NCBI RefSeq assembly: GCF_032191835.1
Contig: NC_083241.1
Coordinates: 1,178,001 to 1,242,000 of the forward strand
Direction of reading: 5' to 3'
Source of the DNA: Heteronotia binoei
Lineage: Eukaryota
DNA: 64,000 nt
A program made the translations under genes and the position numbers. Positions 9,434 through 46,901 of this stretch are shown here, piece by piece. Numbering within the stretch: the stretch's first letter is position 1; every line of letters begins with the position of its first letter. The notes beneath the pieces are model-generated. The model was given only the letters and a program-made list of their open reading frames with translations. It did no database searches and was not told the DNA's origin.

Positions 9434-10717
9434 GGGGAGGGACGGTGGCTCAGTGGCAGAGCATCTGCTTGGCAAGCAGAAGGTCCCAGGTTCAATCCCC
9501 AGCATCTCCAACTAAAAAGGGTCCAGGCAAGTAGGCGTGGAAAACCTCAGCTTGAGACCCTGGAGAGCCATGAATGGGGCTGTGGCTCAGTGGTAGAGCA
9601 TCTGCTGGGTAAGCAGAAGGTCCCAGGTTCAATCCCCGGCATCTCCAACTCAAAAGGGTCCAGGCAAGTAGGTGTGAAAACCCTCAGCTTGAGACTCTGG
9701 AGAGCCATGAATGGGGCTGTGGCTCAGTGGTAGAGCATCTGCTTGGGAAGCAGAAGGTCCCAGGTTCAATCCCCGGCACCTCCAACTAAAAAGGGTCCAG
9801 GCAAGTAGGTGTGAAAACCCTCAGCTTGAGACTCTGGAGAGCCATGAATGGGGCTGTGGCTCAGTGGTAGAGCATCTGCTTCGGAAGCAGAATGTCCCAG
9901 GTTCAATCCCCAGCATCTCCAACTAAAAAGGGTCCAGGCAAGTAGGCGAGAAAAACCTCAGCTTGAGACCCTGGAGAGCCATGAATGGGGCTGTGGCTCA
10001 GTGGTAGAGCATCTGCTTGGGAAGCAGAATGTCCCAGGTTCAATCCCCGGCATCTCCAACTAAAAAGGGTCCAGGCAAGTAGGCGAGAAAAACCTCAGCT
10101 TGAGACCCTGGAGCGCCATGAATGGGGCTGTGGCTCAGTGGTAGAGCATCTGCTTGGGAAGCAGAAGGTCCCAGGTTCAATCCCCGGCATCTCCAACTAA
10201 AAAGGGTCCAGGCAAGTAGGCGTGGAAAACCTCAGCTTGAGACCCTGGAGAGCCTTGAATGGGGCTGTGGCTCAGTGGCAGAGCATCTGCTTGGGAAGCA
10301 GAAGGTCCCAGGTTCAATCCCTGGCATCTCCAACTAAAAAGGGTCCAGGCCGGAGAGCCATGAATGGGGCTGTGGCTCAGTGGGAGAGCATCTGCTTGGG
10401 AGCAGAAGATCCCAGGTTCAATCCCTGGTTTCTCCAACTCAAAAGGGTCCAGGCAAGTAGGCATGAAAAACTTCAGCTTGAGACCCTGGAGAGCCATGAA
10501 TGGGGCTGTGGCTCAGTGGCAGAGCATCTGCTTGGTAAGCAGAAGGTCCAAGGGTCAATCCCCAGCATCTCCAACTAAAAAGGGTCCAGGCAAGGAGGCG
10601 TGGAAAACCTCAGCTGGAGACCCTGGAGAGCCGCTGCCAGCCTGAGTAGACAACACTGGCTTTGATAGACCAAGGGTCTGATTCAGTATAAGGCAGCTTC
10701 ATATGTTCACATGTTCA
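9434..10717 (+). repeat. Tandem array of 9 tRNA-Ala-like SINE heads (137-bp unit) ending in one complete SINE body and tail
   Basis: gctcagtgg at 9448, 9585, 9722, 9859, 9996, 10133, 10270, 10375 and 10511. Tail aggcagcttcatatgttcacatgttca. Confidence 0.92.
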
Positions 10718-10746
10718 AGGTGGTACTTGTGAGCAGAGTCACTTAC

Positions 10747-10892
10747 GTGGGCTTGTTGCATTGCCGCTCCGCGTTCTGCAGTCCAGCACCACAGGTCCGT
10801 GAGCAGGCTGCCCAGGAGCTCCACGCACTCCAGCCACCATTGATGGATTCTGGCCGGTACCCCATATGCACGCACTCCCCATTGAAGCACCA
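10747..10892 (-). CDS. ADAMTS7: ADAMTS7 exon 11, TSR1 (WCFNGECV...[19 protein letters not shown]...CNKP)
   Basis: ttcccag acceptor, GTAAGT donor, 146 nt, WxxWxxW and CSRTCG thrombospondin motifs. Confidence 0.95.
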
Positions 10893-11051
10893 CTGGGAAG
10901 AAAGGGGGAGGCAGGATCAAGTCAAGCCAGCAGGCACAGCAGATAAACAATACCCTCAATGGCCACTCCCTCTAAAATCATCAGGGGCTCATGAGCACAC
11001 AGTCCAGTTCAGCTCTGAGATATCAGAGCACAGCAGAGGGCAGAGACCTCG

Positions 11052-11130
11052 GGGGAGGGGCTGTGGCTCAGTGGCAGAGCAACTGCTTGGCATGCAGAGG
11101 GTTCCAGGTTCAGTCCCCGGGATCTCCAGA
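11052..11130 (+). mobile_element. Isolated tRNA-Ala-like SINE head
   Basis: ggggaggggctgtggctcagtggcagagc...ggttcagtccccgggatctcca. Confidence 0.7.
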
Positions 11131-11162
11131 TAAAAGAATCAGACAGTGGATGGTGTATTCAT

Positions 11163-11615
11163 GTAGAAAAGAGAAAGAGTCCAGTAGCACCTTAAAGGCC
11201 AACAAAATTTGTGATAGGATATGAGCTTTCATGAGTCACTGCTCGCTTCTTCAGATACAGCTAGAATGTAAGTCCATCTGACCTATATATTGGAAAGTGG
11301 AGTGATGCCTGATGTCAAATGTCATTAGCAAGCAAATGACAATAGCAGGCATGATTGGATTAGGTGATATATGCAGAGGGGTGCTAGGTGTGGAGAAAGC
11401 AGCACTGGGATTGAAACAGGAAACCTAGGTCTTGATTCAGTCCAGGTGGATGCATTGTTTTGAGCTTCATTATCAGTTGCAATTCAGCAGTCTCTTTCTA
11501 ATCTCCCTTTGAAATCCTTTTGTAACATAACTGCTCCTACCCTACCATAAATTTTGTTAGTCTTTTGGAGTCTTCCTCTTTTCTACTGCTACAAACAAAG
11601 CTACCCATCTTCATG
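11163..11615. mobile_element. Penelope-like element remnant with inverted ends and a degraded hammerhead-like motif (- strand, 11221-11260)
   Basis: gagtccagtagcaccttaaaggccaacaaaattt is mirrored by aaattttgttagtc at about 11550. CTGAAGA..GAAAGCTC core on the - strand. Confidence 0.65.
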
Positions 11616-11703: not shown

Positions 11704-11905
11704 CTTAAGAACATAAGAACATAAGTGAAGCCATGTTGGATCAGGCCAACGGCCCATCCAGTCCAACACTCTGTGTCACACAGTGGCAAAAAATTTTATA
11801 TATACACACAGACTGTGGCTAATAGCCACTGATGGACCTGTGCTCCATATTTTTATCTAAACCCCTCTTGAAGGTGGCTATACTTGTGGCCGCCACCACC
11901 TAGTC
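11704..11905 (-). mobile_element. CR1 LINE 3' end, single (non-arrayed) copy
   Basis: aagaacataagaacataagtgaagccatgttggatcagg 3' terminus, then body coding FKRGLDKNMEHRSISGY-like sequence. Confidence 0.85.
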
Positions 11906-12689: not shown

Positions 12690-13008
12690 CTGGGAGAACC
12701 GGGTTTGATTCCCCCCTCCTCCACTTGCAGCTGCTGGAATGGCCTTGGGTCAGCCAGAGCTCTCTTATCTGGGAGAACCGGGTTTGATTCCCCCCTCCTC
12801 CACTTGTAGCTGCTAGCATGGCCTTGGGTCCGCCATAGCTCTGGCAGAGGTTGTCCTTGAAAGGGCAGCTGCTGTGGGAGCCCTCTCCAGCCCCACCCAC
12901 CTCACAGGGTGTCTGTTGTGGGGGAGGAAGGGAAAGGAGATTGTGAGCCACTCTGAGACTCTTCAGAGTGGAGGGCGGGATATAAATCCAATATCATCAT
13001 CATCATCA
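12690..13008 (+). mobile_element. 5'-truncated Squam3-like SINE with the 79-bp head module duplicated
   Basis: tgggagaaccgggtttgattc at about 12691 and 12770, junction cagccagagctctcttatc, (ATC)n tail. Confidence 0.8.
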
Positions 13009-13341
13009 GTGGAAAGGTATGAGAGAGAAGCTGCAGTTTGCAGGGCTCACCTGGATGTTCCATCTGGTTTTCACCCAGCACAGGGTGAGAGATGCCCTTT
13101 ACTCCTCATGCTGTTTTTCTGCTGATAATTGCCCCCCCAAGTGTTTTGGCCCCATTGGGAAAGCTATGAGTACCTCTATGTGTTCCCTACCATAGGGAAA
13201 AGCAGCTTGGAGGTAGGGACTACGGTGAAAACGAACAGGATGAAAGAGACCCTGCTCCGCTGCTCTTCCCCTCCGCCCTGAACATCCCAAAATAATGATG
13301 GTAAAAAAGATGCCCCTGAGAGCTGCCCCAGATCTCATTAC

Positions 13342-16430: not shown

Positions 16431-16435
16431 TCTTT

Positions 16436-16658
16436 GAACATATGAACATCTGAAGCTGCCTTCCACTGAATCAGACCCTCCTGGGTCCATCAAAGTCAGT
16501 ATTGTCTACTCAAACTGGCACGACTCTCCAGGGTCTCAAGCTGAGGTTTTTCACGCTTATTTTGCCTGGACCCCTTTTAGGTGGAGATACCGGGGATTGA
16601 ACCTAGGACCTTCTGCTTACCAATCAGAAGCTCTACCACTGAGCCACTGTCCCTCCCC
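16436..16658 (-). mobile_element. tRNA-Ala-like SINE, full-length monomer
   Basis: Reverse complement of the 9434-10717 terminal unit. Confidence 0.85.
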
Positions 16659-18464
16659 AAATCTTAGTCAACTGGAGACCAGCAGGAGCTCTCCGGATGC
16701 CCCTGGAAGGTTCTCTACCCCAGCCAGAGGTTTTGTGCCATGGAGAGGTACTTGCAGGCTGGAGGGGGAAGGCGGCATTTGATTCAGAATTGCAAGAACA
16801 ATAATAATAATAATAATTTTATACCACTGACGTCACCTTATTTCATTTTTATTTAATGATTTTAACTGTCTAATTTGTAACTGTTTTATTGTGTGGTTTT
16901 AATGGTTTATTGTGTTGTAATCCACCCTGAGCCCAACTTGGAAAAGGGCTGACTATAAATTCGCAAATAAAATAAATGATTCAGAACTGCCAGAACCAGT
17001 CTGCTTATCACGCCTCCTCCTCTCGACCGGCCTCAGAATTCTGGGCTTGCCATGGGGCATGGGGGAGGCAAGGAATGCTTCTGTCCTGTGAAGAAGGATG
17101 GTGCTGTCAGAGAGCCAGAATTGCCTCCAGGGATTTCTCACTTTTCCTGAAACACCAGAAGGTGTGTGTGTGGGGGGGGGGTGGATGGGGAAAGAGCTGT
17201 TCACAAGGGACAAAACCTCACTGGCGGGTTGTTCACTGCCTGCCTCTCCCCACCTGGGGGGCTCCCCTTTCCTTTCTGCCTCCCCTGCCCAGCGAACACT
17301 GGCTGGAATTTGGCTCAAAGCAGGGCGAGAAGCACAGAGAAGCAGCCCCCAGAGAAACAAAACACATTTGCATCACCGGGGTTCATTCCTGGAACACTTG
17401 CAAGTCAAACTGAACCAAGACAAGTGCCTCTGTACATGTTCAGAGTGTCATTTCCCGCCCTACTGAGCCACCAGTCCCCAGCTTTTAGGATTAAAGAGGA
17501 TCTTTTCCTTGCTGGCTCGCGCTCCAGGGACCCAGCATGAGAATTAGGGCAATGGGGCCTTGGAGTGACGCATGCGGAGAGACTGCCCACTCCTCTCCCA
17601 GGGCCATACTGTGTCTGCAAGAGCTACCCAAGGGCCCTAACACTGCCTCCAGCCTTGCTCAGCTGCAAGAAGGCCTGCCAGCCGCTGCTCTCTCGTGCCC
17701 TTTTCTTGCCTCCCTTTCCCAGCCAGGCCAAAGGGTCCCGCTGGGCCAAGCAAGAGCAGAGAGAGAAGGAGGCAAGGCCAGAAGAGTCAACAGCAACAGA
17801 AGGCTAAATATAAACAGATGCCAGAAGGAATTTGGCTCAGCCCTCCATAGCTGGGAAGCATTTTTGGCCTTGGCCTGGCGCCACTGGGCCAGGGCTGCTC
17901 TGAAGCAGGAGGTCCCTGGCTGGCAAACCCGGCCAGGCAGGCGGCACAGAGGGAATGCCAGCCTCCGCTCTCCATGCCACATTCTGCAGAATGCAAACTC
18001 TTTCCCCCTTAAGTGCAGCTGCAGTGGACTGAGCCAGTATCCAGGAGGGATCTTCTGGACCGGTACTCATTACAAGCAGAGGTGCTTGCAGGAGTCATCT
18101 CCCTGAGGTCCCAAGCCCAGGAGGGCGGAGGTCAGCAGATGTTCCTCTGGGGCAAGGAAGAGACCCAAATCACTCTTTGCAAAACAACATCGACCCTTTG
18201 CAGGTCCAAGAGTTTCCCTGCCTCTTCACCTGAAAGCCACCCAAAACCACTCTGACCCACCCACCTGCACACCTGCTTCTCCAAAGCTGAGAAGAGAGGC
18301 ATCTCTGAGACTTCTGTGTGCTGGCCACCCTGTCCCTTTCACGCAACCCCGAATGGATCCCTGAGCCATTGCCAGCATGAGGAAGAGCGAGCAAAATGGG
18401 TATCTGGCACAATGCCACAGTCACGCCACTGCCTTTTTGTATTCCTTGCTGCCCTCAGGAGTCT

Positions 18465-19870
18465 CATAAGAGCATAAGAGAAGCCATGTTGGATCAGGCC
18501 AATGGCCCCTCCAGTCCAACACTCTGTGTCACATAAGAACATAAGAGAAGCCATGTTGGATCAGGCCAGTGGCCCCTCCAGTCCAACACTCTGTGTCACA
18601 GAAGAACATAACAGAAGCCATGTTGGAGCAGGCCAATGGCACCTCCAGTCCAACACTCTGTGTCACATAAGAACATAAGAGAAGCCATGTTGGATCAGGC
18701 CAATGGCCCCTCCAGTCCAACACTCTGTGTCACATAAGAACATCAGAGAAGTCATGTTGGATCAGGCCAATGGCCCATCCAGTCCAACACTCTGTGTCAC
18801 ATAAGAACATAACAGAAGCGTTGTTGGATCAGGCCAATGGCACATCCAGTCCAACACTCTGTGTCACATAAGAACATAAGAGAAGCCATGTTGGATCAGG
18901 CCAATGGCCCATCCAGTCCAACACTCTGTGTCACATAAGAGAAGCCCTGTTGGATCAGGCCAATGGCCCATCCAGTCCAACACTCTGTGTCACATAAGAA
19001 CATAAGAGAAGCCATGTTGGGTCAGGCCAAAGGTCCATCCAGTCCAACACTCTGTGTCACATAAGAACATAAGAGAAGTCATGTTGGATAAGGCCAATGG
19101 CCCATCCAGTCCTACACTCTGTGTCACATAAGAACATAAGAGAAGCCATGTTGGATTAGGCCAATGGCCCCTCCAGTCCAACACTCTGCGTCACATAAGA
19201 ATATAAGAGAAGCCCTGTTGGATCAGGCCAATGGCCCCTCCAGTCCAACACTCTGTGTCACATAAGAACATAAGAGAAGCCCTGTTGGATCAGGCCAATG
19301 GCCCATCCTGTCCAACACTCTGTGTCGCATAGGGGCCAAAGAAACCAGGTGCTATCAGGAGAACTCCAGAAGCCCTCCCACTGTTGCCGCCCCCCACAAG
19401 CACCAAGAATACAGAGCATCACTGCCCCAGATGAGAGTTCCAACAATATGCTGTGGCTAATACCCACTGATGAACCTCTGCTCCATATGTTTATCCAATC
19501 CCCTCTTGAATCCCTCTATGCATGTAGCTGCCACCATCTCCTGTGGCAGTGAATTCCATGTGTTAATTACTCTTTGGGTGAAGAAGTACTTCCTTTTATC
19601 TGTTTTAACCTGACTGCTCAGCAATTTCATTGAGTGTCCACAAGTTCTTGTATTGCGGGATGCATGCATAATCTTGTAAACCTCTATCATGTCACCCCTC
19701 AGTCGTCATTCCTCCAAGCTAAAGAGCCCCAAGCGATTTAACCTTTCTTCATAGGGAAAGCGTTCCAAACCTTTAATCATTTTAGTTGCTATTTTCTGCA
19801 GTTTTTCCAATGCTAGAATATCTTTTTTTGAGATGTGGTGACCAGAATTTTACACAGTACTCCAAATGAA
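18465..19870 (-). mobile_element. CR1 LINE 3' fragment with its terminal 67 bp repeated 13 times (18465-19330)
   Basis: 13 copies of cataagaacataagagaagccatgttggatcaggccaatggcccatccagtccaacactctgtgtca, then 3' UTR and ORF2 remnant (GHSMKLLSSQVKTDKRKYFFTQRVINTWNSLPQ). Confidence 0.92.
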
Positions 19871-19879
19871 CACCGAATA

Positions 19880-20106
19880 CTGAACATGGAACACTGAACT
19901 TGAAACTGATGAGTGTAGCTTTAGGACCGCTGTATGATTTAATGTTCATGTATATTACAAATGTTTACATTTTTAACTATAAATTATGAAATGTCAATTT
20001 TAATGTTTAATTTTATATTTTATGTTAGTTTTATATGTTGTAAGCCGCCCTGAGCCACCTAGTGGGAAGGGCGGGATATAAATCTTAAAATAAATAAATA
20101 AATAAA
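19880..20106 (+). mobile_element. L2 3' UTR/tail fragment
   Basis: ttgtaagccgccctgagcc..gggcgggatataaat then (TAAA)n. Similar tails occur near 4340-4415, 16800-16975, 32440-32505 and 52370-52505. Confidence 0.7.
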
Positions 20107-20430: not shown

Positions 20431-20581
20431 CTGCAAGAGCACAGCCCCCCAAGGGGGGAGGTGAGCCGTGTACCCATACACAAGCACCAAGGAACTTCAG
20501 GCTGGGCAGGGGCGTTGGGCATTCTAGAGAGGGCTCCTCTCCCCAGGCCTTCAGGGGCCGCCCACTATGGATGCCCTCACA

Positions 20582-20972
20582 TATGAACAAATGAAGCTGC
20601 CTTATACTGAATCAGACCTTTGGTCCATCAAAGTCAGTATTGTCTTCTCAGACTGGCAGCGGCTCTCCAGGGTCTCAAGCTGAGGTTTTTCACACCTATT
20701 TGCCTGGACCCTTTTTAGGTGGAGATGTCGGGGATTGAACCCGGGACCTCCTGCTTACATATTAACATATGAAGCTGCCTTCTACTGAATCAGACCCTCG
20801 GTCCATCAAAGTCAGTATTGTCTTCTCAGACTGGCAGCGGCACTACAGGGTCTCAAGCTGAGGTTTTTCACACCTATTTGCCTGGACCCTTTTTTAGTTG
20901 GAGATGCCGGGGACTGAACCTGGGACCTTCTGCTGCTTCCCAAGCAGATGCCACTGAGCCACCGTCCCTCAC
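20582..20972 (-). mobile_element. Head-to-tail dimer of tRNA-Ala-like SINE (full copy 20764-20972, 5'-truncated copy 20582-20760)
   Basis: Two successive gaagctgcctt..ctgaatcagacc tails. Confidence 0.82.
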
Positions 20973-21312
20973 CTCTTCTGCAGGATCTCAACCACACCCC
21001 CAGAGGGCATGCAGGGGGTTCTCTTTCTCTTACGTACACACACAGAGAGAGCTTTTGAAGACTGAAATACTCTGATTTTGCTTATTGGTTTTGCATTTTT
21101 TCCCCCCTTAAAATTTACCAAAAGCAAAACACAAAATTTGGGGAACCTGAACACACTGCAGTGTTTCTGGAGTTGACAAACTAAAAGTTTGCTTGCAAAA
21201 TGTAATAAAAGCAGAAGTTAATAGCTGCATTCTGGACAGCGGTAGTTCCGCACTGTGGATCTGATGCCTCCACATGCAAGGTCAAGACGGAAGCAGCCAG
21301 TCTTTGCCATAC

Positions 21313-22574: not shown

Positions 22575-23050
22575 AGACTGGTGTGCATACCTTTGGGACT
22601 GCCTCTCCCCATATGTGCCCCAGAGAGCACTTTGTTCAGGGTCCCAAAACCTCCTTAGGATCCCCGGACCAAAAGAGGCTCGACTGTCCATCACCAGAGC
22701 CAGAGCGTTTTCAGTAACAGCTCCTGCTTTGTTGCACCCCCTCCCTGAAAACATCAGGGCCCTGCAGGACCTGCCATAGTTCCGCAGGGCCTGTAAAACC
22801 GAATTGTTTCAACTCACTTTTAGAGGCTGAAGGGAGGTAGCTATTACTCATCATAACTGAGGCAATAACATTCAGAGTAATTAGAAACGCACATCTTGGT
22901 TTTAATGATTGTAAACTGTACTGGTTGATTGTATTGTGTAATCTGTTTTTAATGTTTTATGTGGTTTATTTGCTGTTTGTTAGACAGCCGCCCTCAGCCC
23001 GTCAGGGGAGGGCGGGATATAAATCTGATAAGATAAAATAAATAAATAAA
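22575..23050 (+). mobile_element. L2 LINE 3' fragment
   Basis: gggactgcctctccccatatgtgccccagagagcact..ccgcagggcctgtaaaac, tail gggcgggatataaat(TAAA)n. Confidence 0.8.
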
Positions 23051-23355
23051 ATGTGCCCTTCTTAACTGCGGAATGCTGAAAGTAATTAACTGAGACCCTG
23101 TAGTTATGCTCCATCTGTCTCTTCTCGAGCATGGCAGTAACTAACAGCCTCCTTTTCTTTAAGGCAGGGTGAATGGTTGTGCTGTGTTAAATCTCCTCTG
23201 TCCCCAATCAGAGAAACAGATTCCAATTTACCATTCCAAACTACACTACATCCTACTGTTCGTTGCATTGCATTACAATCACTACCCTCCCTACAGGGAA
23301 TTCTCAAAAGAAGTCATGACCATGAAGTGGTTTAAAATTGTGCTCCCAGGGGCAT

Positions 23356-24427
23356 GAAGAAGAAGAAGATGATATTGGATTTATATCCCGCCCTCCACTC
23401 CGAAGAGTCTCAGAGTGGCTCACAATCTCCTTTCCCTTTCCTCCCCCACAACAGACACCCTGTGAGGTAGATGAAAATATTGGATTTATATCCCGCCCTC
23501 CACTCCGAAGAGTCTCAGAGTGGCTCACAATCTCCTTTCCCTTCCCTCCCCCACAACAGACACCCTGTGAGGTAGATGAAAATATTGGATTTATATCCCG
23601 CCCTCCACTCCGAAGAGTCTCAGAGCGGCTCACAATCTCCTTTACCTTCCTCCCCCACAACAGACACCCTGTGAGGTAGATGAAGATATTGGATTTATAT
23701 CCCGCCCTCCACTCCAAAGAGCCTCAGAGCGGCTCACAATCTCCTTTCCCTCCCCCCCCCCCCACAACAGACACCCTGTGACGTAGATGAAGATATTGGA
23801 TTTATATCCCGCCCTCCACTCCAAAGAGTCTCAGAGCGGCTCACAATCTCCTTTACTTTCCTCCCCCACAACAGACACCCTGTGAGGTAGATGAAGATAC
23901 TGGATTTATATCCTGCCCTCCACTCCGAAGAGTCTCAGAGCGGCTCACAATCTCCTTTCCCTTCCTCCCCCACAACAGACACCCTGTGAGGTAGATGAAG
24001 ATATTGGATTTATATCCCGCCCTCCATTCTGAAGAGTCTCAGAGCGGCTCACAATCTCCTTTACCTTCCTCCCCCACAACAGACACCCTGTGAGGTGGGT
24101 GGGGCTGGAAAGGGCTCTCACAGCAGCTGCCCTTTCAAGGACAACCTCTGCCAGAGCTATGGCTGACCCAAGGCCATTCCAGCAGGTGCAAGTGGAGGAG
24201 TGGGGAATCAAGCCCGGTTCTCCCAGATAAGAGGGCTCTGGCTGACCCAAGGCCATTCCAGCAGGTGCAAGTGGAGGAGTGGGGAATCAAATCTGGTTCT
24301 ACCAGATAAGAGAGCTCTGGCTGACCCAAGGCCATTCCGGCAGCTGCAAGTGGAGGAGTGGGGAATCAAACCCGGTTCTCCCAGATAAGAGTCCACACAC
24401 TTAGCCACTACACCAAACTGGCTCTCC
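23356..24427 (-). mobile_element. Squam3-like SINE with tail module x7 (about 105 bp, 23356-24100) and head module x3 (79 bp, 24165-24400)
   Basis: atattggatttatatcc at 23372, 23477, 23582, 23686, 23793, 23897 and 24001; three gataagag head modules; single 5' end gctctcc. Confidence 0.9.
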
Positions 24428-24881
24428 ATACCAAACTGGCATGAGCTACTAGAACATTCTTCTGTGCAAGCTCCACTCTGCAATGGAGGCTGCTGAGATT
24501 CTCAGTCTGTTATTTGGTGAGAAAATGCATGTGCCATCTCTCCAGATACCTATCAGAGGCACTTCACAAAGTCAAATCAACACTATCAAAAAAGCAATCA
24601 TGAAATGATTAATAGTTTTGGAAGATGTTCTTGCCAGCACGAGGACAAACACCAAGCAAAGGAGACCTGGGGTAATTATGTAGCTATGAAATACAAGAAA
24701 AGCCCCAGGGTAACAAAAGACTTGAATACTTAACAACACTCTTAAAGTATTAGATATTTGTAATTACAAACAACATATAAAGTAACAAAGCCCACTCTAA
24801 CAAGGAAAATTCTACGAACAAGAAATACAACAAGCTTTTCTTGTATTTTATAGCACAAGGGCAAAAGCGGAGTGCCAATAC

Positions 24882-25006
24882 CTTGTGAGTAGGACAGCAA
24901 CATCATGGTGTAGCGGGTGAGTGTCCCCTTTCACGTTGATGGCTTTCTGCCACTTACAAAAACTCCGCAGGGTGTTGTCTGCGTGGTGGGTGATTTTCAG
25001 GTCCTC
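24882..25006 (-). CDS. ADAMTS7: ADAMTS7 exon 6 ([21 protein letters not shown]...[10 protein letters not shown])
   Basis: tctgcag acceptor, GTATTG donor, 125 nt. Confidence 0.95.
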
Positions 25007-26400: not shown

Positions 26401-26444
26401 AAGCCCGGTTGATCTTAAAGCAAACATACTAGTCATTTTTCCTT

Positions 26445-27700
26445 CATAAGAACATAAGAGAAGCCATGTTGGATCAGGCTAGTGGCCCATCCAGTCCAAC
26501 ACTCTGTGTCACATAAGAACATAAGAGAAGCCCTGTTGGATCAGGCCAATGGCCCATCCAGTCCAACACTCTGTGTCACATAAGAACATAAGAGAAGCCA
26601 TGTTGGATCAGGCCAATGGCCCATCCAGTCCAACACTCTGTGTCACGTAAGAGAAGCCATGTTAGATCAGGCCAATGGCCCATCCAGTCCACCACTCTGT
26701 GTCACATAAGAACATAAGAGAAGCCCTGTTGGATCCGGCCAGTGGCCCATCCAGTCCAACACTCTGTGTCACAGAAGAACATAAGAGAAGCCATGTTGGA
26801 TCAGGCCAATGGCCCATCCAGTCCAACACTCTGTGTCACATAAGAAAAGCCATGTTGGATCAGGCCAGTGGCCCATCCAGTCCAACACTCTGTGTCACAT
26901 AAGAACATAAGAGAAGCCATGTTGGATCAGGCCAATGGCCCATCCAGTCCAACACTCTGTGTCACAGAAGAACATAAGAGAAGCTATGTTGGATCAGGCC
27001 AATGGCCCATCCAGTCCAACACTCTGTGTCACATAAGAACATAAGAGAAGCCATGTTGGATCAGGCCAATGGCCCATCCAGTCCAACACTCTGTGTCACA
27101 GAAGAACCTAAGAGAAGCCATGTTGGATCAGGCTAATGGCCCATCCAGTCCAACACTTTGTGTCACATAAGAACATAAGAGAAGCCTTGTTGGATCAGGC
27201 CAGTGGCCCATCCAGTCCAACACTCTGTGTCACATAAGAACATAAGAGAAGCCATGTTAGATCAGGCCAATGGCCCATCCAGTCCAACACTCTGTGTCAC
27301 ATAAGAACATAAGAGAAGCCCTGTTGGATCAGGCCAATGGCCCCTCCAGTCCAACATTCTGTGTCACAGAAGAACATAAGAGAAGCCATGTTGGATCAGG
27401 CCAATGACCCATCCAGTCCAACACTTTGTGTCACAGAAGAACATAAGAGAAGCCATGTTGGATCAGGCCAATGGCCCATCCAGTCCAACACTCTGTGTCA
27501 CACAGTGGCCAAAAAAACCCCAGGTGCCACCAAGAGGTCCACCAGTGGGGCTAGAATTCCTTCCACTGTGCCCCCCCCCAAAGCACAAGATACAGAGCAT
27601 CACTGCTTCAGACAACAATATACTGTGGCTAATAGCCACTGATGGGCCTCTGCTCCATATGCTTATCCATTCCCCTCTTGAACCTGGATATACTTGTAGT
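26445..27700 (-). mobile_element. CR1 LINE 3' fragment with its terminal 67 bp repeated 16 times (26445-27500)
   Basis: 16 tccaacact-type modules; body truncated at about 27700 (FKRGMDKHMEQRPISGY). Confidence 0.92.
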
Positions 27701-27733
27701 CAAGCATAGACAGTCATTTTTCCTTCTGTTTAC

Positions 27734-30169: not shown

Positions 30170-31280
30170 GGATTACCTAACACCCTTATGGAGGAGAAGT
30201 CTAAAAGCAGCCATGGTGACTAAAAGGAACCTCCATGTTCAGAGACAGTCAACCTCGGAATCCCAGAGGAATCCCAAGGAAGACCTTGGCCTTTATGCCC
30301 TGTTGTTGGCCTTCCAGAGGAACTGGCTGGTCACTGTGTGAGACAGGAGGCTGGACTAGATGGACCCTCCCTAGTCTGATCCAGCAGGACTCTTCTGAGG
30401 TTCTTCTCAAAGGAAGGCCTCAGCCTCTTTGCCCTGTTGTTGGCCCTCCAGAGGAACTGGCTGGCCACTGCGTGAGACAGGATGCTGGACTAGATGGACC
30501 CTCCCTGGTCTGACCCAGCAGGTTCTTCTCAGAGGAAGGCCTCAGCCTCCATGCCCTGTTGTTGGCCCTCCAGAGGAACTGGCTGGCCACTGTGTGAGAC
30601 AGGATGCTGGACTAGATGGACCCTCACTGGTCTGATCCAGCAGGGCTCTTCTCAGAGGAAGAGGTTCTTCTCAGAGGAAGGCCTCAGCCTCCATGCCCTG
30701 TTGTTGGCCCTCCAGAGGAACTGGCTGGCCACTGCGTGAGACAGGATGCTGGAATAGATGGGCCTTCACTGGTCTGATCCAGCAGGGCTGAGGTTCTTCT
30801 CAAGGGAAGGCCTCAACCTCCATGCCCTGTTGTTGGCCCTCCAGAGGAACTGACTGGCCACTGTGTGAGACAGGAGGCTGGACTAGATGGACCCTCCCTG
30901 GTCTGATCCAGCAGGACTCTTCTGAGGTTCTTCTCAGGGGAAGGCCTCAGCCTCTCTGCCCTGTTGTTGGCCCTCCAGAGGAACTGGTTGGCCTCTGTGT
31001 GAGAGAGAAGGCTGGACTAGATGGACCCTCCCTGGTCTGATCCAGCAGGACTCTTCTGAGGTTCTTCTCAGGGGAAGGCCTCAGCCTCTTTGCCCTGTTG
31101 TTGGCCCTCCAGAGGAACTGGCCGGCCACTGCGTGAGACAGGATGCTGGACTAGATGGACCCTCCCTGGTCTGAACCAGCAGGGTTCTTCTCAGAGGAAG
31201 GCCTCAACCTCCATGCCCTGTTGTTGGCCCTCCAGAGGAACGGCTGGCCACTGTGTGAGACAGGAAGCTGGACTAGATGT
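30170..31280 (+). mobile_element. CR1 (second subfamily) 3' end with an about 121-145 bp terminal module repeated 8 times
   Basis: gccctgttgttggcc x8 (30298-31215); each unit carries the tgctgga..tccagca stem-loop. Confidence 0.85.
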
Positions 31281-32691: not shown

Positions 32692-33050
32692 CAGCCCATC
32701 GCAGGTGCTGAGCGCAGCCAGTCCACTTCCCCATTCCTCGTTCTGAACCGACCCAATCATGTGGCAAGGGTTCTGCCCGTCAGCCCGGATCTTGGCACGA
32801 GCGATTCCTCCATATCGCCTCTCACTAACAAAGCCCGGAGCCAGAAGGTGGCTGTTCAGGTGCAAGTCGAAGCTCAGCTGATGTCCCCGGTGGTGCAGCT
32901 TGTAGAAGGACCGCAAGGAGTTCTGAGAGGAAATGGCCCTTTTGTAGAGGAAACGGTGGGATAGGTTGTAGGAGAGAAAGACTCCCCTCTCGTTCACCTT
33001 GACAGGATGGACAATATCGTAGTCAGAGTCTTTTGTGTGCAGGGATCCTG
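32692..33050 (-). CDS. ADAMTS7: ADAMTS7 exon 2, prodomain (DIVHPVKVNERGVFLSY...AALSTCDGL)
   Basis: Acceptor cacag|CAG|GAT (tandem acceptor, alternative start 33047), donor GTAAGC, 359 nt. Confidence 0.93.
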
Positions 33051-33399
33051 CTGTGAAAAAGATGTCAGAATTATCAGCCTGCAAGAGAAAGCACGGTCCC
33101 TCGCGAAGGGCATTCTGACGGGGAGAGGGATGCAGGAACACTGCCGCTGACCTGAAGTCACAGAGCCCCTCAGCTGCAAGCAGAGGGGAGTCCCATGAAG
33201 AAGGAGAAAAGACATGTCAGTTCCAACTCCAAACAGGGCAAAGCACCTCAGGGGATGCTAAATGCAAAAAGTGCTGGGAGGAGCGGGGGCTGCTTTTGCT
33301 CCATGCTACTTGCCGGATCATTTAAAGTTCTGGAGGTTTTAAAGCTGGTGGAGACAAGAGCGTGAGATGGAAGAACTCCAGCAGCAGAGCCTTTTCAGT

Positions 33400-34288: not shown

Positions 34289-36767
34289 GTGACTCCTTCC
34301 GACCTTCGTGCCCTCCCGCCTTTCTGTGCAGCTGCCCACTTGCCCCGGGCATGGATGGCGGCAAACAGCAGGGCATTATCCCAGGCTGTCTTGCGGAACC
34401 ATATTCATCATTGCCTTGCCTGGGTTGTCACCAGAGTGGTTCTTTCATGCTGCTCCATAACCAGGGGCATGTTTGGGCATCCCATTTCCCTGCGCTCCAG
34501 CAACAAGGGGCATCTCAGTGCCCTCCTTGCATTTGCCCTCCTCCCGACCACATCTCCTCCCATTGGCGCGCAGAGTGGGTTCGCTCCACAGCGCAAGATA
34601 GTCCCCTCTGCAGAGAAGGCAGCACAAAATGCCTGCCCACGGCTGTGGAGATTTCTCAGTGTGCTCCTTCCCTCTGCTAGCCTGCATGGCCTGCTAAGCA
34701 TTCTTCTAGTGCTCCAGGAAGGATTTTCGATCCGTTGATTATATGCTGTGAATGCCTTACCATTGCATCTTTTTTTCCAGTGGACAGGCTTGTGTTGAAT
34801 GTGGTGGCGGTGAGCTACATAAAAATGTTGAGTGTGGGAGACCTTTGCTTGTTGCCTTTGAAACTTCTCCTTAGCATGGCCTGGCTTGGGGAGTCACAAG
34901 CTAGAAGGGGCCAGGAGGGCAGGGCGTGCAGGTGCTGATACCAGCAAGAGCCAAATACACCAAGGCTCCCTTGGATTTCCAGCAACTTGGCATCGCTAGC
35001 AATATGTTCCCTGGCAGCCAGGGGGGAATTTCTACACTTGGATGTCCTGACAAGCTATTTAGAACAAGCCACGGCTCACAAGCCCGCTTTGGCTTAGAAT
35101 CCAGGTTTATAGCTGGACTAGAGTTAGTTGGGGGCCAGCGTTTGCGTGTCCTGACAAACTGGATTGCAAAGCAGAGATGTCTGAAAGCTGTCTGTGTGCT
35201 CCGCTTCCTGAGCCTGTTGTTGGTGTAAGTGTGACATCTGGTGGAGAAAGAGGCAGCTGCTCTCGGTTCATGCACATTTTAATGCTGCTGTCAGGCTGGC
35301 AATAGAACCACTGAGTAGACCCAGCTGGCAGCTCTGGTGGGGTGAGTGTGATGCCCTTATGGTCCTGCATGCCCAGCCAAGAGAGAGTTGCCTCTTCCTA
35401 GGGACTGAGGCCTCCAATCTGTGTAAGAACCCTTTGGGGAACGTGGGACATAGAATGGGAAGGGATCACTTACTGGGAACTTCTCTGCACTGACCTTGGC
35501 ATCATCTCGGCGACAGCATCCAAATCAGCACTGTGCATCATTCCAAATTCTCTCAGCTTTCTGAATTGCCTGTTAGCCACTGTGGTGAGGTGGCATCAGA
35601 GACACATCTGAATGGCAACTGGGTTTCACTGTAGTGCTTCACTTCTGCAGGGCAGGGGGGAGTTAGCTTCCCAGATACATTAAGATGGGGCAACTTCTAG
35701 GACACCCCCAGCCTGTGAGCTTTCAGTCTCTGATGTGGATATGCCCTGGCATTTGTGTGTCCTCCTTGTCAAGCATGTGGTTTATACTCAGTATTAAATG
35801 TTAAGTCCGATTCTGCTAGTAGAATACTTCCCATATAATTGCATATCAAAGCTAAGGGACCCTCCCTGCTTCTCACCTCTCTTTTCTCTTTCCCACCTTT
35901 GAGTAGCAAATGTAGGAATGTCATGTTTTGATAATGAGTGCCTCCCGGAAAGGTCTCCACACTGTAACCATCAACTGTAATAAGAATGCCTGGGACTTTA
36001 ACCGCAGAGATAGTCGCATATTTGCAGTAATTCACACGTTCTTGTTATGTCTTTTAACTATCATTCCTAAATGCTTTGATGTAACCCTTAAAGCTTCATG
36101 CCTTGCTTTACTTTGTATCACTTTCAAGGTGTGACACCTTGAAGCAACAATGGATTATCAATAAACTAAGACTTTGTATTAAATAATTACTTGGTTATCT
36201 GAAACTTCCATGCTTGACACTCCTCTGTGGTTGGCAGAGAGAAGCAGGCATCAACATGGAGAAATCTGATGGTAACTATTGGCCAAGGTTATTGAAGAGT
36301 GGGCAAAGAGATGGTGCTGCAGTGGCTGCATCCAACTGGGGTGCTGGAGAAAGGGGGTTCCCACCCTCCAGTGGCTCATGTGTTCATTAAAATCTTTATT
36401 AGCCACCTTCCTTACAGAGGTCAAAGCAGCTTATGACACTGAAAACATAAAACCAAGATGCCCAAATCGCAACCCAGGGCTGCTACTGAATCAAATGCCC
36501 TCATGGATAAAAGTGTCTCCAAGCTGTGTGCTCAAGCTTGAAAGTGGGGTGCCAGGCACACCTCCCTGAGGAGATCACTCCACAATTGTGGGGTTGCCAC
36601 TGAAAAGACTCTCTCACAGAACCATTGTGGCATGGCAACTATGGGGTGAGGGGGACAACTGCCTTCTGGATTGAAGAATATCACACACACACACACACAC
36701 CTCGAGCCTTTCCTACAGAATTGTTATACCCTAACTGCCCACAATCAAATAAAAGGGGAGGGAGACA

Positions 36768-37113
36768 CATAAGAGAAGCCATGTTAGATCAGGCCAATGG
36801 CCCATCCAGTCCAACATTCTGTGTCACACAGCGGCCAAATACATACATACATATATATATATGGCTAATAGCCACTGATGGACCTCTGCTCCATATTTTT
36901 ATCTAAACCCCTCTTGAAGGTGGCCATGCTTGTGGCCGCCACCACCTCCTGTGGCAGTGAATTCCACATGTTAATCACCCTTTGGGTGAAGAAGTACTTC
37001 CTTTTATCCGTTTTAACCTGTCTGCTCAGCAATTTCATCGAATGCCCACGAGTTCTTGTATTGTGAGAAAGGGAGAAAAGTACTTCTTTCTCTACTTTCT
37101 CCATCCCATGCAT
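36768..37113 (-). mobile_element. CR1 LINE 3' fragment, non-arrayed
   Basis: MHGMEKVEKEVLFSLSHNTRTRGHSMKLL...FKRGLDKNMEQRSISGY plus cataagagaagcc terminus. Confidence 0.9.
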
Positions 37114-38974: not shown

Positions 38975-39029
38975 GTAGGTGCCCGCCCAGGGCGAGGGGC
39001 CCCCCCTGCTGAGCTCTCCCGGTTGGGGT

Positions 39030-41600
39030 CCCCCCCCCTCCTCCACTCGCCCCTGCTGGAGTGGCCTTGGGTCAGCCAGAGCTCTGGCAGGAGTTGTCCT
39101 TGAAAGGGCAGCTGCTGGGAGAGCTCTCTCAGCCCCACCCACCTCGCAGGGTGTCTGTTGTGGGGGAGGAAGGGAAAGGAGATGGTGAGCCGCTCTGAGA
39201 TTCAGAGTGACGTGTGGGGTATACATCCAACTGCTCCTCCTCCTCCTCCTCCGCCAGTTCGGTGCAGGGGTTAAGTGCGCAGACTCTTATCTGGGAGAAC
39301 TGGGTTTGATTCCCCCCTCCTCCACTTACAGCTGCTGGAGTGGCCTTGGGTTAGCCAGAGCTCTCTTATCTGGGAGAACCAGGTTAGATTCCCCACTCCT
39401 CCACTTGCACCTGCTGGAATGGCCTTGGGTCAGCCAGAGCTCTCTTATCTGGGAGAACCGGGTTTGATTCCCCACTCCTCCGCTTGCAGCTGCTGGAATG
39501 GCCTTGGGTCAGCCACAGCTCTCTTATCTGGAAGAACCGGGCTTGATTCCCCACTCCTCCACTTGCACCTGCTGGAATGGCCTTGGGTCAGCCATAGCTC
39601 TCTTATCTGGGAGAACCGGGTTTGATTCCCCACTCCTCCACTTGCACCTGCTGGAATGGCCTTGGGTCAGCCATAGCTCTCTTATCTGGGAGAACCGGGT
39701 TTGATTCCCCACTCCTCCACTTGCAGCTGCTGGAATGGCCTTGGGTCAGCCAGAGCTCTCTTATCTGGGAGAACCGGGTTTGATTCCCCACTCCTCCACT
39801 TGCAGCTGCTGGAGTGGCCTTGGGTTAGCCAGAGCTCTCTTATCTGGGAGAACCAGGTTAGATTCCCCACTCCTCCACTTGCACCTGCTGGAATGGCCTT
39901 GGGTCAGCCATAGCTCTCTTATCTGGGAGAACCGGGTTTGATTCCCCACTCCTCCACTTGCAGCTGCTGGAATGGCCTTGGGTCAGCCAGAGCTCTCTTA
40001 TCTGGGAGAACCGGGTTTGATTCCCCACTCCTCCACTTGCAGCTGCTGGAGTGGCCTTGGGTTAGCCAGAGCTCTCTTATCTGGGAGAACCAGGTTAGAT
40101 TCCCCACTCCTCCACTTGCACCTGCTGGAATGGCCTTGGGTCAGCCATAGCTCTCTTATCTGGGAGAACCGGGTTTGATTCCCCACTCCTCCACTTGCAC
40201 CTGCTGGAATGGCCTTGGGTCAGCCATAGCTCTCTTATCTGGGAGAACCGGGTTTGATTCCCCACTCCTCCACTTGCAGCTGCTGGAATGGCCTTGGGTC
40301 AGCCAGAGCTCTCTTATCTGGGAGAACCGGGTTGGATTCCCCACTCCTCCACTTGCACCTGCTGGAGTGGCCTTGGGTTAGCCAGAGCTCTCTTATCTGG
40401 GAGAACCGGGTTTGATTCCCCACTCCTCCACTTGCACCTGCTGGAAGGGCCTTGGATCAGCCCTAGCTCTCTCAGGAGTTGTCCTTGAAAGGGCAGCTGA
40501 TGTCAGAGCTCTCTCAGCCCCACCCACCTCAAAGGGTGTTTGTTGTGGGAGAGGAAGGTAAAGGAGATCGTGAGCCCCTCTGAGACTCTTGAGATTTGGA
40601 ATGGAGAGCTACTTTGATGTAGTGGTTAAGTGCGCGGACTCTTATCTTGGAGAACTGGTTTGATTCCCCACTCCTCCACTTGCACCTGCTGGCATGGCCT
40701 TGGGTCAGCCAGAGCTCTCACACAGCTGCCTTTCAAAGGGCAGCTTCTGGGAGCGCTCTCTCAGCTCCACCCACCTCATTGGATGTCTGTCGCGGGGTAG
40801 GGGGAAAAATAAAAGAGATGGTGACTGCTCTGAGATTCAGAGTGAAGTGTGGGGTATAAATCCAACTGCTCCTCCTCCTTCGCCAGGTTGGTGTAGTGGT
40901 TAAGTGTGCGGACTCTTATCTGGAAGAACTGGATTTGATTCCCCACTCCTCCACTTGCACCTGCTGGAAGGGCCTTGGGTCAGCCAGAGCTCTGGCAGAG
41001 TTGTCCTTGAAAGGGTGGTTTCTGGCTGAGCTCTCTCAGTCCCACCCACCTCACAGCGTGTCTGTTGTGGGGGGAGAAGATTTAGGTGATTGTAAGCTGC
41101 TCTGAGTCTCTGATTCAGGGAGAAGGGCAGGGTATAAATCTGCAATTCTTGTCTTGCAGAGTTGTCCTTGAAAGGGCAGCTGCTGAAAGAGCTCTCTCAG
41201 CCTCACCCACCTCACAGGGTGTCTGTTGATGTTCGGGGAAGGTAAAGAAGATGGTCACCACTCTGAGACTCTGAGATTCAGAGCATGGGGGGATATAAAT
41301 CCAATATCTTATTATTGAGAGAGCCAGTTTGATGTAGTGGTTAAGTGCGCAGACTCTTATCTGGGAGAACCGGGTTTGATTCCCCACTCCTCCACTTGCA
41401 GCTGCTGGAATGGCTTTGGGTTAGCCATAGCTCTCACAGAGATGTCCTTGAAAGGGCAGCTTCTGCGAGAGCTCTGTCAGCCCCACCCACCTCACAGGGT
41501 GTCTGTTGTGGGGGAAGGAAAGTAAAGGAGAATGTGACCGCTCTGAGTCTCTGATTCAGAGAGAAGGGTAGGGTATAAATTTGCATTCTTCTTCTTCTTC
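39030..41600 (+). mobile_element. Head-to-tail train of about 6 Squam3-like SINE copies filling MORF4L1 intron 2
   Basis: Copies at about 39030-39250, 39252-40590, 40605-40880, 40882-41155, 41157-41310 and 41318-41600, all in the + orientation. Confidence 0.88.
39284..40468 (+). repeat. 79-bp minisatellite x15 derived from the SINE head module, with a 237-bp higher-order repeat
   Basis: ctcttatctgg at 39284 + 79n (n = 0-14), no indels seen. Confidence 0.93.
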
Positions 41601-41626
41601 TTCCTCCTTTCCTCCCTCCCTCCTAG

Positions 41627-44652: not shown

Positions 44653-44733
44653 GGAACAGTATGCAGAAGGAAAGATGAGAGGGGCTGCTCCAGGCAAGAA
44701 AGCGTCTGGTCTCCAGCAGAAAAATGTTGAAGT
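44653..44733 (+). CDS. MORF4L1: MORF4L1 exon 5 (EQYAEGKMRGAAPGKKASGLQQKNVE)
   Basis: tttttcaag acceptor, GTAAGA donor, 81 nt. Confidence 0.96.
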
Positions 44734-45685
44734 GTAAGAAACTGTCTGTGTCTCTCTTTTTCACTGTTTTTTCTTCCAAGGACAAAACGTTCTAAAAATC
44801 CTGGTGGGCCTATTTGCAAATCTCCAAATTATGCATAATGGGGGACATTACTAGGTTTGGAAAATGTAGCTGATCTTTAGTTACTTCATTGATTAGTGCA
44901 TCTGGTTTAATCTGTAAAGAACTGGATAAAGGCCGAGTCAACAGCTGCTTTGCAAGACAGACCCGTGAGCCACAGAGACCTCACATTTAGGTTCCAGTGG
45001 GAAGGGCTCCCAATTCCATGTCTGGATCAAGGGTTTAAATCCCTTCTACTTGAGTAGGACTTCAGCAGTTAAGCCTGTGCACAGCTTTGTGAGCTCTCAA
45101 GGTATAAGCAAGTGCGTGCATCTTCCCTCAGACCTGACTTGGGTTTGAAGAAGCTCCTTTCCAAATGCATGTTTTTAAGAATGCTGAATTGAAAGGTGTG
45201 CTGGCAAAACAGGTTTCCCTGAAGTCAGATGCCTCCTGGTAATAAATCCTCTAGAGACTTCCAGAGTACAGCATGGTTCTTGAGTGTTCTTTTACTTGCT
45301 AAAAAGCCCCACTGAGTAAACAAGTGTCAAGAGCTGCATCATTCCAATGGTATGACTTCAAAGCGAGCTAGTTGGCTCTCGGGAATTTTAGTGTCTTATT
45401 GATTGGGGGGTGGGTGGGTTGGGCCGCTGGACTTCCATGGCCTTACTTTGGTTTCTGCTTCTGTGGAGGAATAGATGGAATATGCCAACTCTTGAGTCTA
45501 GCTGGTCTTTTTACTACAAGGTGAAAGGGAAGGGGGAAATAGAAATAACACGTTCCAAGCCAAACCGTCCTGCTTCCCAGGGTATGTTGAACAGGGCTGT
45601 AACTTTTAAGCTTAACTGCATTCTCTTAAAGGCTCCGCACGTCAGGTCTGACACTCTCCTTAACTCAACCCCCCATTGTACCTAG

Positions 45686-45748
45686 ATTTTTCAGACGAGA
45701 TGGAGCGCATACAGTTTGCAGTTTGGAGACCCCTGCAATATCGACGCG
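45686..45748 (+). CDS. MORF4L1: Candidate in-frame alternative exon of MORF4L1 (FFRRDGAHTVCSLETPAISTR, 63 nt; 54 nt if the AG at 45693-45694 is used)
   Basis: cctag acceptor, GCG|GTGAGT donor, phase 2-2, no stop codon, CpG-rich relative to the surrounding intron. Confidence 0.65.
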
Positions 45749-46424
45749 GTGAGTTAAGGATGGATTGTCACACCAGGATCTTCATCCTGAAACACCCAGA
45801 TTTCCTTGAGTAGTCACTGAACATCTCTCTTTCAATACAATGTGGTTGTACTGGGGCCCTGTTGTTCCTCCCTGGAGCTTGTTTGAAGAGAAGGAATTGT
45901 GCATTTCCTCACTTGCTAAAGCAGCTCTTGTGGATTCTCAGTCCTGGTCCAAGTTTTTTTTCTTTTAAGAAATCCGCCCTCGGTCACTTGCTGCACATCT
46001 GCCAGTAGCTCAGTGGTGCTGAGGGGAGGTGTCACCCTTTGAAGCATTGGAGTCATGGTAGGCGGCAGATGGCATCGGCAACCTCAGCCTCACACCCTGG
46101 AGGAGGAGGGTGTGGCTACATTTGGATGATTGACAGCCGCCTTATGAGAGTTTTTGCAGTCTCGCTCAGGAGTTTCTAGCCTTAGCTGAAACTGTGCCTC
46201 TTTTTGTGCAGCAGCAAGACACTGGGGGGGGGGGGGGGGAGAGGTCAAGGGAGTTTTTCTGCAAAACGCGTTTTCTTTCGAAGCACCAGTTTGTTGATGG
46301 GGCAGTTTCATGCAGTAGCAGTCCATTCTAAACATGTTGATTTGAGTGAGCTTAAATTGGAATAACCCTGCATCGTTTCTCACTCTTAACATATTTACGC
46401 ACTGCTCTCTCAATCTCTCTCTCA

Positions 46425-46901
46425 GGAGAGCCAGTTAAATGGGCGAACTCTTATGTGGGATTCTTAACCAAGTTTGATTCCCCACTCCTCCACTTGCACC
46501 TGCTGGAATGGCCTTGGGTCAGCCATAGCTCTGGCAGAGGTTGTCCTTGAAAGGGCAGCTGCGGTGAGAGCCCTCTCCAGCCCCACCCACCTCACATGGT
46601 GTCTGTTGGGGGGGGAAGAAGGGAAAGGAGATTGTGAGCCGCTCTGAGACTCTTCGGAGTGGAGGGCGGGATATAAATCCAATATCTTCATCTACCTCAC
46701 AGGGTGTCTGTTGTGGGGGAGGAAGGGAAAGGAGATTGTGAGCCGCTCTGAGACTCTTCGGAGTGGAGGGCGGGATATAAATCCAGTATCTTCATCTACC
46801 TCACAGGGTGTCTGTTGTGGGGGAGGAAGGGAAAGGAGATTGTGAGCCGCTCTGAGACTCTTCAGAGTGGAGGGCGGAATATAAATCCAATATCTTCTTC
46901 A
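46425..46901 (+). mobile_element. Squam3-like SINE with tail module x3
   Basis: ctcacagggtgtctgttgtgggg..gggcgggatataaatcc repeated; junction atcttcatctacctcacagg. Confidence 0.87.

Follow-up and report, generated by a model that had tools for sequence, protein, structure and literature searches.

Tandem arrays built from modules of Squam2, Squam3 and CR1 retroposons in a 64-kb stretch of a gecko genome

Retroposon-derived arrays and genes in the window

The window considered here is the whole stretch of 64,000 nucleotides at positions 1,178,001 to 1,242,000 of contig NC_083241.1 (Heteronotia binoei, assembly GCF_032191835.1), which is free of N and of masking. At about ten sites it carries head-to-tail arrays derived from two families of short interspersed elements (SINEs), Squam2 and Squam3, and from the ends of CR1, a long interspersed element (LINE), as found by Tandem Repeats Finder (TRF) and self-BLAST. 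The arrays were called by TRF, and their units were placed on the parent elements by self-BLAST and by BLAST with one monomer per family (Table 1); units within an array are 86-96% alike by TRF, which is well over chance. An original prediction, made from the letters of this DNA, had listed nine arrays with their periods and copy numbers, and all nine were recovered by TRF. The unexpanded monomers that it cited are likewise present (8921-9215, 11704-11901, 16436-16659 and 36767-37063), and TRF further reports two whole-element dimers on which it had laid little stress. The elements that it called a "tRNA-Ala SINE" and a "MIR-type SINE" (monomer 8921-9215) correspond, as judged by sequence comparison, to Squam2 (published consensus, PMC10702118) and Squam3, respectively.

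The open reading frame (ORF) at 32623-33141 on the minus strand matches the propeptide of the reprolysin family (Pep_M12B_propep, E 1.7e-16), which indicates an ADAM/ADAMTS-type gene on that strand, with the arrays at 9-31 kb lying in its introns. The start of the CR1 copy at 26445-27700 is separated by some 60 bp from what is probably an exon, placed at about 27760-27850. Further along, a train of Squam3 copies (39020-41625) ends at a splice acceptor, and the exon from 41627 reads …CVKVAIKDKQVKYFIHYS, which we take to be the chromodomain of MRG15/MORF4L1.

Table 1. Retroposon copies and tandem arrays of the window, in order of position
Positions	Strand	Feature	Period	Copies	Method
8921..9215	+	Unexpanded young Squam3 monomer, reference for module coordinates			BLAST
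9436..10716	+	Squam2 copy with sSat2-type array, then normal body and CR1-like tail			TRF, unit table
9439-10632		Squam2 head array	137 bp	8.7	TRF
11704..11901	-	CR1 3' end, single tail, three 8-nt repeats, short-UTR subfamily
12690..13010	+	5'-truncated Squam3, beginning at SINE position 47 of upstream 79-bp unit; then full unit, body and tail
12690-12842		Squam3 head array	79 bp	1.9	TRF
16436..16659	-	Unexpanded Squam2 monomer			BLAST
18461-19331		CR1-tail array	67 bp	13	TRF
18465..19905	-	5'-truncated CR1: body 19332-19905 (ORF2 C-terminus, 3' untranslated region), then last 67 nt x13 (18465-19331)
20579..20974	-	Full Squam2 copy, second copy from SINE position ~40 joined at its 3' end	178	2
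20579-20934		Squam2 whole-element dimer	178 bp	2	TRF
23358..24428	-	Composite Squam3: head module x3 (24153-24391) and tail module x7 (23364-24096)
23364-24096		Squam3 tail array	104 bp	7	TRF
24153-24391		Squam3 head array	79 bp	3	TRF
26445..27700	-	Short 5'-truncated CR1: body 27503-27700, then last 67 nt x16 (26445-27502)
26445-27502		CR1-tail array	67 bp	16	TRF
30200..31279	+	3' untranslated region of second CR1 subfamily, last ~134 nt x7.6 (30277-31279)
30277-31279		Tail array of second CR1 subfamily, final unit incomplete	134 bp	7.6	TRF
36767..37063	-	CR1 3' end, single tail, one 8-nt repeat, short-UTR subfamily
39020..41625	+	Train of six head-to-tail Squam3 copies; second (39253-40601) holds 79 bp x15 array
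39284-40472		Squam3 head array	79 bp	15	TRF
40991-41301		Whole-element dimer	161 bp	1.9	TRF
46429..46903	+	Squam3 copy with 104-bp tail module x3 (46589-46900)			TRF, BLAST
46589-46897		Squam3 tail array	104 bp	3	TRF
48222..48437	-	Unexpanded Squam2 monomer			BLAST

The joints between adjacent units were followed by means of k-mers spanning them, a check that had been proposed with the prediction and that was run within the window allowing up to two mismatches. All four k-mers are found solely at array joints: that of CR1 has 26 matches at two loci, that of the Squam3 head 17 at three loci on both strands, that of the Squam3 tail eight at two loci on both strands, and that of the Squam2 head eight at one locus. 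Recurrence of a junction at separate loci, as predicted, is seen for CR1, the Squam3 head and the Squam3 tail, and recurrence in both orientations for the two Squam3 joints, the Squam2 head joint being seen at a single locus.

It might be supposed that the arrays, or at least their lengths, are products of mis-assembled dispersed repeats, and a 2023 survey of squamate SINE-derived satellites does warn that array length depends on assembly quality (PMC10702118). We regard such an artefact as highly improbable, given that the units differ by 4-8% in ordered, locus-specific patterns, that the arrays stand in register with unique flanks and have clear target-site duplications in at least two cases, and that the same array classes occur in independent gecko assemblies (PMC10702118). 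When words from 23000-28000 were looked up in sequencing runs of 11 organisms, at most 17% of them were matched in any run, and these matches are probably the repeats themselves.

Squam2 arrays

The array-bearing Squam2 copy at 9436-10716 is bounded directly at both ends by an 8-nt target-site duplication, CAAGGTGG. Its unit comprises the first 131 nt of the SINE and a 6-nt filler, repeated 8.7 times; the filler reads ATGAAT in all eight joints, and the unit follows the published consensus from the 5' end to …CTGGAGAGCC. The survey by Vassetzky, Kosushkin and Ryskov, who described SINE-derived satellites in 56 squamate genomes and found them most diverse in geckos (2023, PMC10702118), counts as a satellite locus one whose middle monomers number four or more and which has a longer end unit extending to the SINE terminus. 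The locus at 9439-10632 has the features of sSat2: 8.7 units shorter than the SINE, the last of which continues to 10716. Further, sSat2-Gja1 of Gekko japonicus has the same limits, running from the SINE 5' end to …CTGGAGAGC plus a short filler, with a length of 139 nt as against 137 here. The fillers differ: that of sSat2-Gja1 has about 8 nt (TGTAAAGA), and the one in this window, when the limit of the published unit is applied, has about 7 nt (CATGAAT; the 6 nt given above count it as ATGAAT). A common origin of the two joints is possible on this comparison.

The units of this array are not uniform. Its first unit shares the leader GGGGAGGGACR with all Squam2 monomers of the window, and the inner units have the leader GGGGCT, as in the published consensus. 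One unit (10267-10371) has a 32-bp internal deletion, and the unit pairs 2-3, 4-5 and 7-8 have private variants in common. The Squam2 dimer at 20579-20974 represents a joint of another kind than that of the 137-bp head array, with only two units and a 3'-terminal position.

Because the 137-bp units derive from Squam2, they attract tRNA calls: each scores as tRNA-like in Rfam with 43-67 bits, and ARAGORN agrees. The "tRNA genes" called by these programs at 9438-10438, 16580-16654 and 48360-48431 are all Squam2 SINE heads, whose anticodons vary by unit. A third tRNA-derived SINE, with the head GGGGCTGTGGCTCAGTGGCAGAGCA…, is present as a single copy without an array at 11057-11300 (+); its body resembles that of Sauria/Squam1.

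Squam3 arrays and the train of Squam3 copies

By BLAST against the young monomer at 8921-9215, the Squam3 head module corresponds to monomer positions 40-120 (79 bp) and the tail module to positions 177-280 (104 bp). This monomer and all the units read as Squam3B or as gecko variants listed in the supplement of PMC10702118. Two of the arrays reach the threshold of four middle monomers (23364-24096, with seven units, and 39284-40472, with 15); those at 46589-46897 (three units), 24153-24391 (three) and 12690-12842 (two) fall under it and are short loci in the terms of that paper.

The joints are the same from locus to locus. The 79-bp head joint is identical at 12690-12842, 24153-24391 and 39284-40472, and the 104-bp tail joint is identical at 46589-46900 and 23364-24096. 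At these last two loci an odd short tail (…CTTCATCT) replaces the natural (CTT)n in eight of eight joints. The composition of the head arrays is also alike across their three loci: the upstream units carry G at both site 48 and site 75 of the unit, and the last unit conforms to the monomer, with T at site 75 at every locus and C at site 48 at two of the three. As G at site 75 is the state found in older Squam3 copies, it is a subfamily marker rather than a fresh mutation. This difference between inner and last units argues against plain duplication in situ, which would make both alike. Among the tail units, unit 2 has one variant common to both loci, a hint of colinear order.

Individual hosts add to this picture. 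The copy at 12690-13010, which begins at position 47 of its upstream unit, could be the product of 5' truncation of a two-unit RNA, or else of conversion. The composite Squam3 at 23358-24428 has a 7-nt direct repeat, TCATGCC, that abuts its tail, the upstream copy lying about 10 nt before the 5' end. By our own count, arrays are found in three of four young-type Squam3 copies as against one of nine older ones (Fisher P about 0.05; the samples are small). Put the other way, three of the four array hosts are of the young type and the fourth (39253-40601) of the older type, again in a small sample. On RNA folding, the Squam3 tail unit is modestly more stable than shuffled sequences (z -2.1), and the 79-nt Squam3 and 134-nt CR1 units show no excess of stability over shuffles.

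That older host lies within the train at 39020-41625. The six copies of the train must be separate insertions because they are only 75-88% alike, and four of their five joints fall at a resident microsatellite tail. One copy is 5'-truncated, starting from SINE position 118 directly against such a tail. This suggests that resident tails attract new insertions, and that a truncated insertion yields the very type of joint that founds tail arrays. Along the array inside the second copy the unit types run a b c d d c a b c a b d c a, amounting to a three-unit higher-order repeat. Its host has flanks of the older subfamily and several inner units identical to the young monomer, and the last unit switches type midway; such a mosaic suggests recombination or conversion inside the train. 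Unequal exchange or slippage has left traces in the tail array at 23364-24096 as well, where the unit pairs 3-4, 5-6 and 6-7 each have a private variant in common.

Observations of this kind invite an explanation purely in terms of DNA-level dynamics, namely unequal homologous recombination and gene conversion among existing copies, with array-bearing RNA never having been retroposed. Unequal homologous recombination among abundant SINE copies is the model favoured by Vassetzky et al. (PMC10702118), and it would accommodate the mosaic hosts, both the array at 39284 with its older flanks and young inner units and the Squam2 array with its monomer-type leader on the first unit only. The concentration of about ten arrays from three families in 38 kb could likewise mark a recombination-prone region, and conversion can also add a unit to a 5'-truncated host. 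Yet the arrays are enriched in young Squam3 copies despite the longer time available to older ones, and most unit limits fall on exact RNA ends, which exchange between DNA copies need not respect. We therefore consider an origin by such dynamics alone rather unlikely, while giving it real weight.

CR1-tail arrays

The assignment of the LINE arrays to CR1 is made from their 3' structure and from a C-terminal ORF2 motif typical of the family. Upstream of the array at 18461 only the C-terminal part of a CR1-like ORF2 is found, interrupted by stops. An intact 131-aa homologue is encoded at 51341-51733, with the sequence PYEERLKRLG…, which we take to be a CR1 motif. For this type of ORF, Pfam gave no match, a word search gave two nameless matches, and an atlas match scored 0.86 and serves as a lead only.

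The element at 26445-27700 has a target-site duplication of about 25 nt (27701-27726 and 26420-26444, with one substitution and two small indels between the copies). A duplication of this length is unusual. Because it fixes the end of the insertion, the last base of the CR1 element is seen to be the last base of the repeat unit. In the 67-bp unit a hairpin precedes an 8-nt repeat, which is present once or twice, and over all CR1 tails of the window TTCTTATG occurs one to three times; the amniote CR1 3' end is known to have this form, with an 8-nt microsatellite after the hairpin (PMC8665684). The hairpin of the 67-nt unit folds at -20.1 kcal/mol, a stability weakly above that of shuffles (z -1.7). 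Three units of 59 nt have one 8-nt repeat fewer (18933-18991, 26838-26896 and 26645-26703). In the array of the second subfamily, the 134-bp unit ranges in length from 122 to 142, depending on how many short motifs it ends with; the final one is incomplete. Homology links the 3' half of the 134-bp unit to the 67-bp unit as well as to the Squam2 tail, which is LINE-derived. A deletion is common to units 2 and 7 of the array, and two bases are common to units 1, 5 and 6.

The two 67-bp arrays both sit on copies with a long 3' untranslated region (UTR), and both young single-tail copies are of the short-UTR type. These arrays have five unit variants in common, where 1.75 would be expected (P=0.02). 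Transversions account for four of them, and the variants seen most often in each array are among the five. Units differ by 4.3-6.8% within arrays and by 5.9% between them, and they group by locus weakly but significantly (3 of 2000 permutations). Dating of the arrays by the divergence of their CR1 hosts was tried and rejected: divergence is 17-31% for the bodies but only 3-7% for the tails, those of single-tail copies included, and this contrast is uninformative on age because it reflects subfamily differences and a conserved tail.

The exactness of these ends raises the question of whether each joint might have been made anew at every insertion. The LINE reverse transcriptase would here re-prime or switch at a fixed stop, much as telomerase does, and lay down the array in a single burst during target-primed reverse transcription. 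The 3' limits of the units do coincide with the exact RNA 3' end, and the presumed recognition site of the reverse transcriptase, hairpin plus 8-nt repeat, lies within the CR1 unit; moreover, the CR1 distances are alike within and between arrays. A precedent exists in UnaL2 of the L2 clade, where the TGTAA repeats arise by template slippage on the short 3' repeats of stringent-type LINEs (PMC3747384). The CR1 ends here are similar in that the number of 8-nt repeats varies both between units (59 versus 67 nt) and between single tails (one to three); slippage of this type, however, accounts for repeats of 5 to 8 nt and not for a unit of 67 or 134 nt. Several further points tell against re-making: untemplated addition would not recreate identical filler and odd tail bases, the 5' limit lies at 67 nt in one CR1 subfamily and 134 nt in another despite homologous tails, leaving no common structural stop, and re-priming at the 3' end cannot produce head arrays at all. 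The higher-order repeats and the variants common to neighbours, for their part, indicate stepwise growth at the level of DNA. Such repeated re-making is, to our minds, improbable.

A tandem repeat of a different nature, unrelated to the SINE and CR1 arrays, lies at 60075-60227, where a (TCCC)n run is followed by 3.5 copies of a 31-bp unit.

Origin, spread and growth of the joints

Seven joint types can be distinguished in the window, and in five of them the joint begins at the exact 3' end of the upstream copy, namely the CR1 67 and CR1 134 joints, the Squam3 tail joint, the Squam2 178-bp dimer and the whole-copy joints of the train. At the Squam2 head joint, which includes a filler, the exact boundary is the 5' end of the downstream unit. 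Only one type, the 79-bp unit of the Squam3 head, is internal on both sides, and its limits share the 4-nt microhomology CTCT. Arrays are in register within their host copies, and target-site duplications are found for two or three of the elements. In the published alignment, the tail-type sSat3 variants likewise have a common SINE 3' end and differing 5' limits (PMC10702118). For most joints, the first copy most likely arose in an event at the level of retroposition.

The joints common to several loci, in turn, look inherited from a joint that arose once or a few times, to judge from their sequences. Four observations lead to this view: the odd joint bases are identical between loci, and no repeated process would recreate them; the inner units differ from the end units of their hosts in the same way across loci; the two CR1 arrays have more unit variants in common than expected; and the presence of arrays follows the subfamily of the host. 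That the arrays arrived with the insertion is favoured by their enrichment in young copies, since old copies had more time to expand. The higher-order repeats and the variants common to neighbouring units, finally, show growth at the DNA level by unequal exchange or slippage.

Taken together, we consider it reasonably probable that the window holds the published sSat2 and sSat3 satellites plus a counterpart of them from the CR1 LINE, with a founding joint, its spread by inheritance and local growth. Briefly, the following mechanism may be advanced. At the outset, a 5'-truncated copy would be reverse-transcribed onto a resident tail, creating the founding joint; a template switch to the 3' end of a second RNA is another route to such a product. 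An exception at this step would be the 79-bp unit of the Squam3 head, which has the form expected for a slippage duplication of DNA at CTCT. The duplicated element would keep both its promoter head and its 3' recognition tail and could still be copied by the LINE machinery, a second step partly documented here, whereby the same joint with the same odd bases would be placed at unlinked loci inside retroposon copies. Copy number at each locus then shifts by unequal exchange or replication slippage, as the arrays of the window show, giving 2 to 16 units.

Two options had been posed at the outset, that local expansion is seeded by master elements in which the module is already duplicated, or that one step of reverse transcription or recombination reproducibly makes the junctions. 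The former is the better supported, apart from the older host at 39253-40601, which does not fit it; the latter is disfavoured by the 6-nt filler and the odd tail, which would not be recreated identically. Several points do weigh against the three-step scheme. Inheritance is argued, on sequence grounds, from two or three loci per joint. No colinear order of units, such as retroposition of long arrays as a whole would produce, was seen between the two CR1 arrays when it was looked for. At 39284, flanks of an older subfamily than several of the inner units are better explained by import through recombination or conversion than by simple descent from a master element. The composite Squam3 calls either for a recombinant master or for two separate acquisitions, of its head and its tail arrays, and the 134-bp array ends in a cut unit without a natural 3' end.

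A broader proposal, which we put forward only tentatively, is that the LINE reverse transcriptase itself makes the founding joints at RNA ends, by priming on resident tails or by switching between RNAs, and that the resulting multi-tail CR1 and multi-module SINE variants stay mobile. Retroposition would then seed minisatellites systematically, those of CR1 tails included.

Relationship to known satellites

Two of the three SINE unit boundaries of the window had already been published (Vassetzky 2023, PMC10702118), in agreement with the caveat, voiced in the prediction, that the SINE part is not wholly new. The 104-bp unit has the same start base (ACCTCACAGGG…) as sSat3_Gja1a of Gekko japonicus, and both reach the SINE 3' end; here as in sSat3, the end unit is longer and runs on into the remainder of the SINE, with few to many units per locus. 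It differs from sSat3_Gja1a by about a tenth, as estimated by eye, and has a short, odd tail (CTTCATCT) rather than a long (CTT)n. The 79-bp head unit (positions 40-120) has no match among the published gecko sSat3 variants, its position resembling that of a 67-nt snake unit (42-108). Such differences from the Gekko japonicus satellites point, at the sequence level, to another gecko lineage.

A single unstable region as the source of the shared joints was considered and rejected, as two of the joints have counterparts in Gekko japonicus. The description of the arrays as a "window-wide system" is an overstatement: we are dealing with a property of the families, two of whose unit types recur in that species.

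Neither the 79-bp unit from the Squam3 head nor the arrays of CR1 tails (67 bp x13 and x16; 134 bp x7.6) are described in the 2023 paper. The view that the CR1 arrays are the least familiar part holds up, since they are absent from that survey of squamate SINE-derived satellites, in which the term CR1 does not occur (PMC10702118). In the literature searched, LINE-derived satellites appear only as single families, such as the chicken HinfI repeat, which embeds the CR1 3'UTR and part of ORF2, and the common cetacean satellite, which comes from the L1 3' end (PMC9659126). Both resemble the arrays described here in that a LINE 3' region has become tandem. They differ in that each forms one satellite family and has units that do not coincide exactly with the terminal module, whereas the CR1 unit here is exactly the last 67 or 134 nt, with the CR1 body attached and the joint present at separate loci. 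The finding as a whole is genuine and of an ordinary kind, the CR1-tail arrays being the LINE counterpart of the published SINE-derived class.

Chimeric retrocopies generated by template switching of reverse transcriptase, such as the U6-L1 chimeras of mammals, offer a further parallel. Like the tail-type joints, they connect the exact 3' end of one RNA with a site inside another. The chimeras are, however, one-off products of different RNAs, whereas in the present arrays the partners are of the same family and the product is heritable and expanding.

Conclusions

Little documentation exists so far of how dispersed repeats become tandem ones. Every stage of this can be seen here in three families of a single window: single copies, copies inserted upon the tails of one another, two-unit joints, and arrays of 15-16 units with higher-order structure. 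The arrays fill introns of an ADAM/ADAMTS-family gene and of what we presume to be MORF4L1; they yield false tRNA calls and are likely to serve as length-polymorphic markers. Should the unit limits at RNA ends hold genome-wide and the arrays travel with a mobile subfamily, the birth of minisatellites would be tied to the insertion chemistry of CR1-type LINEs, and the published SINE-derived satellites would be extended to their LINE partner. If reverse transcriptase did make the founding joints, target-primed reverse transcription would be tied to the birth of tandem repeats, a connection not reported before.

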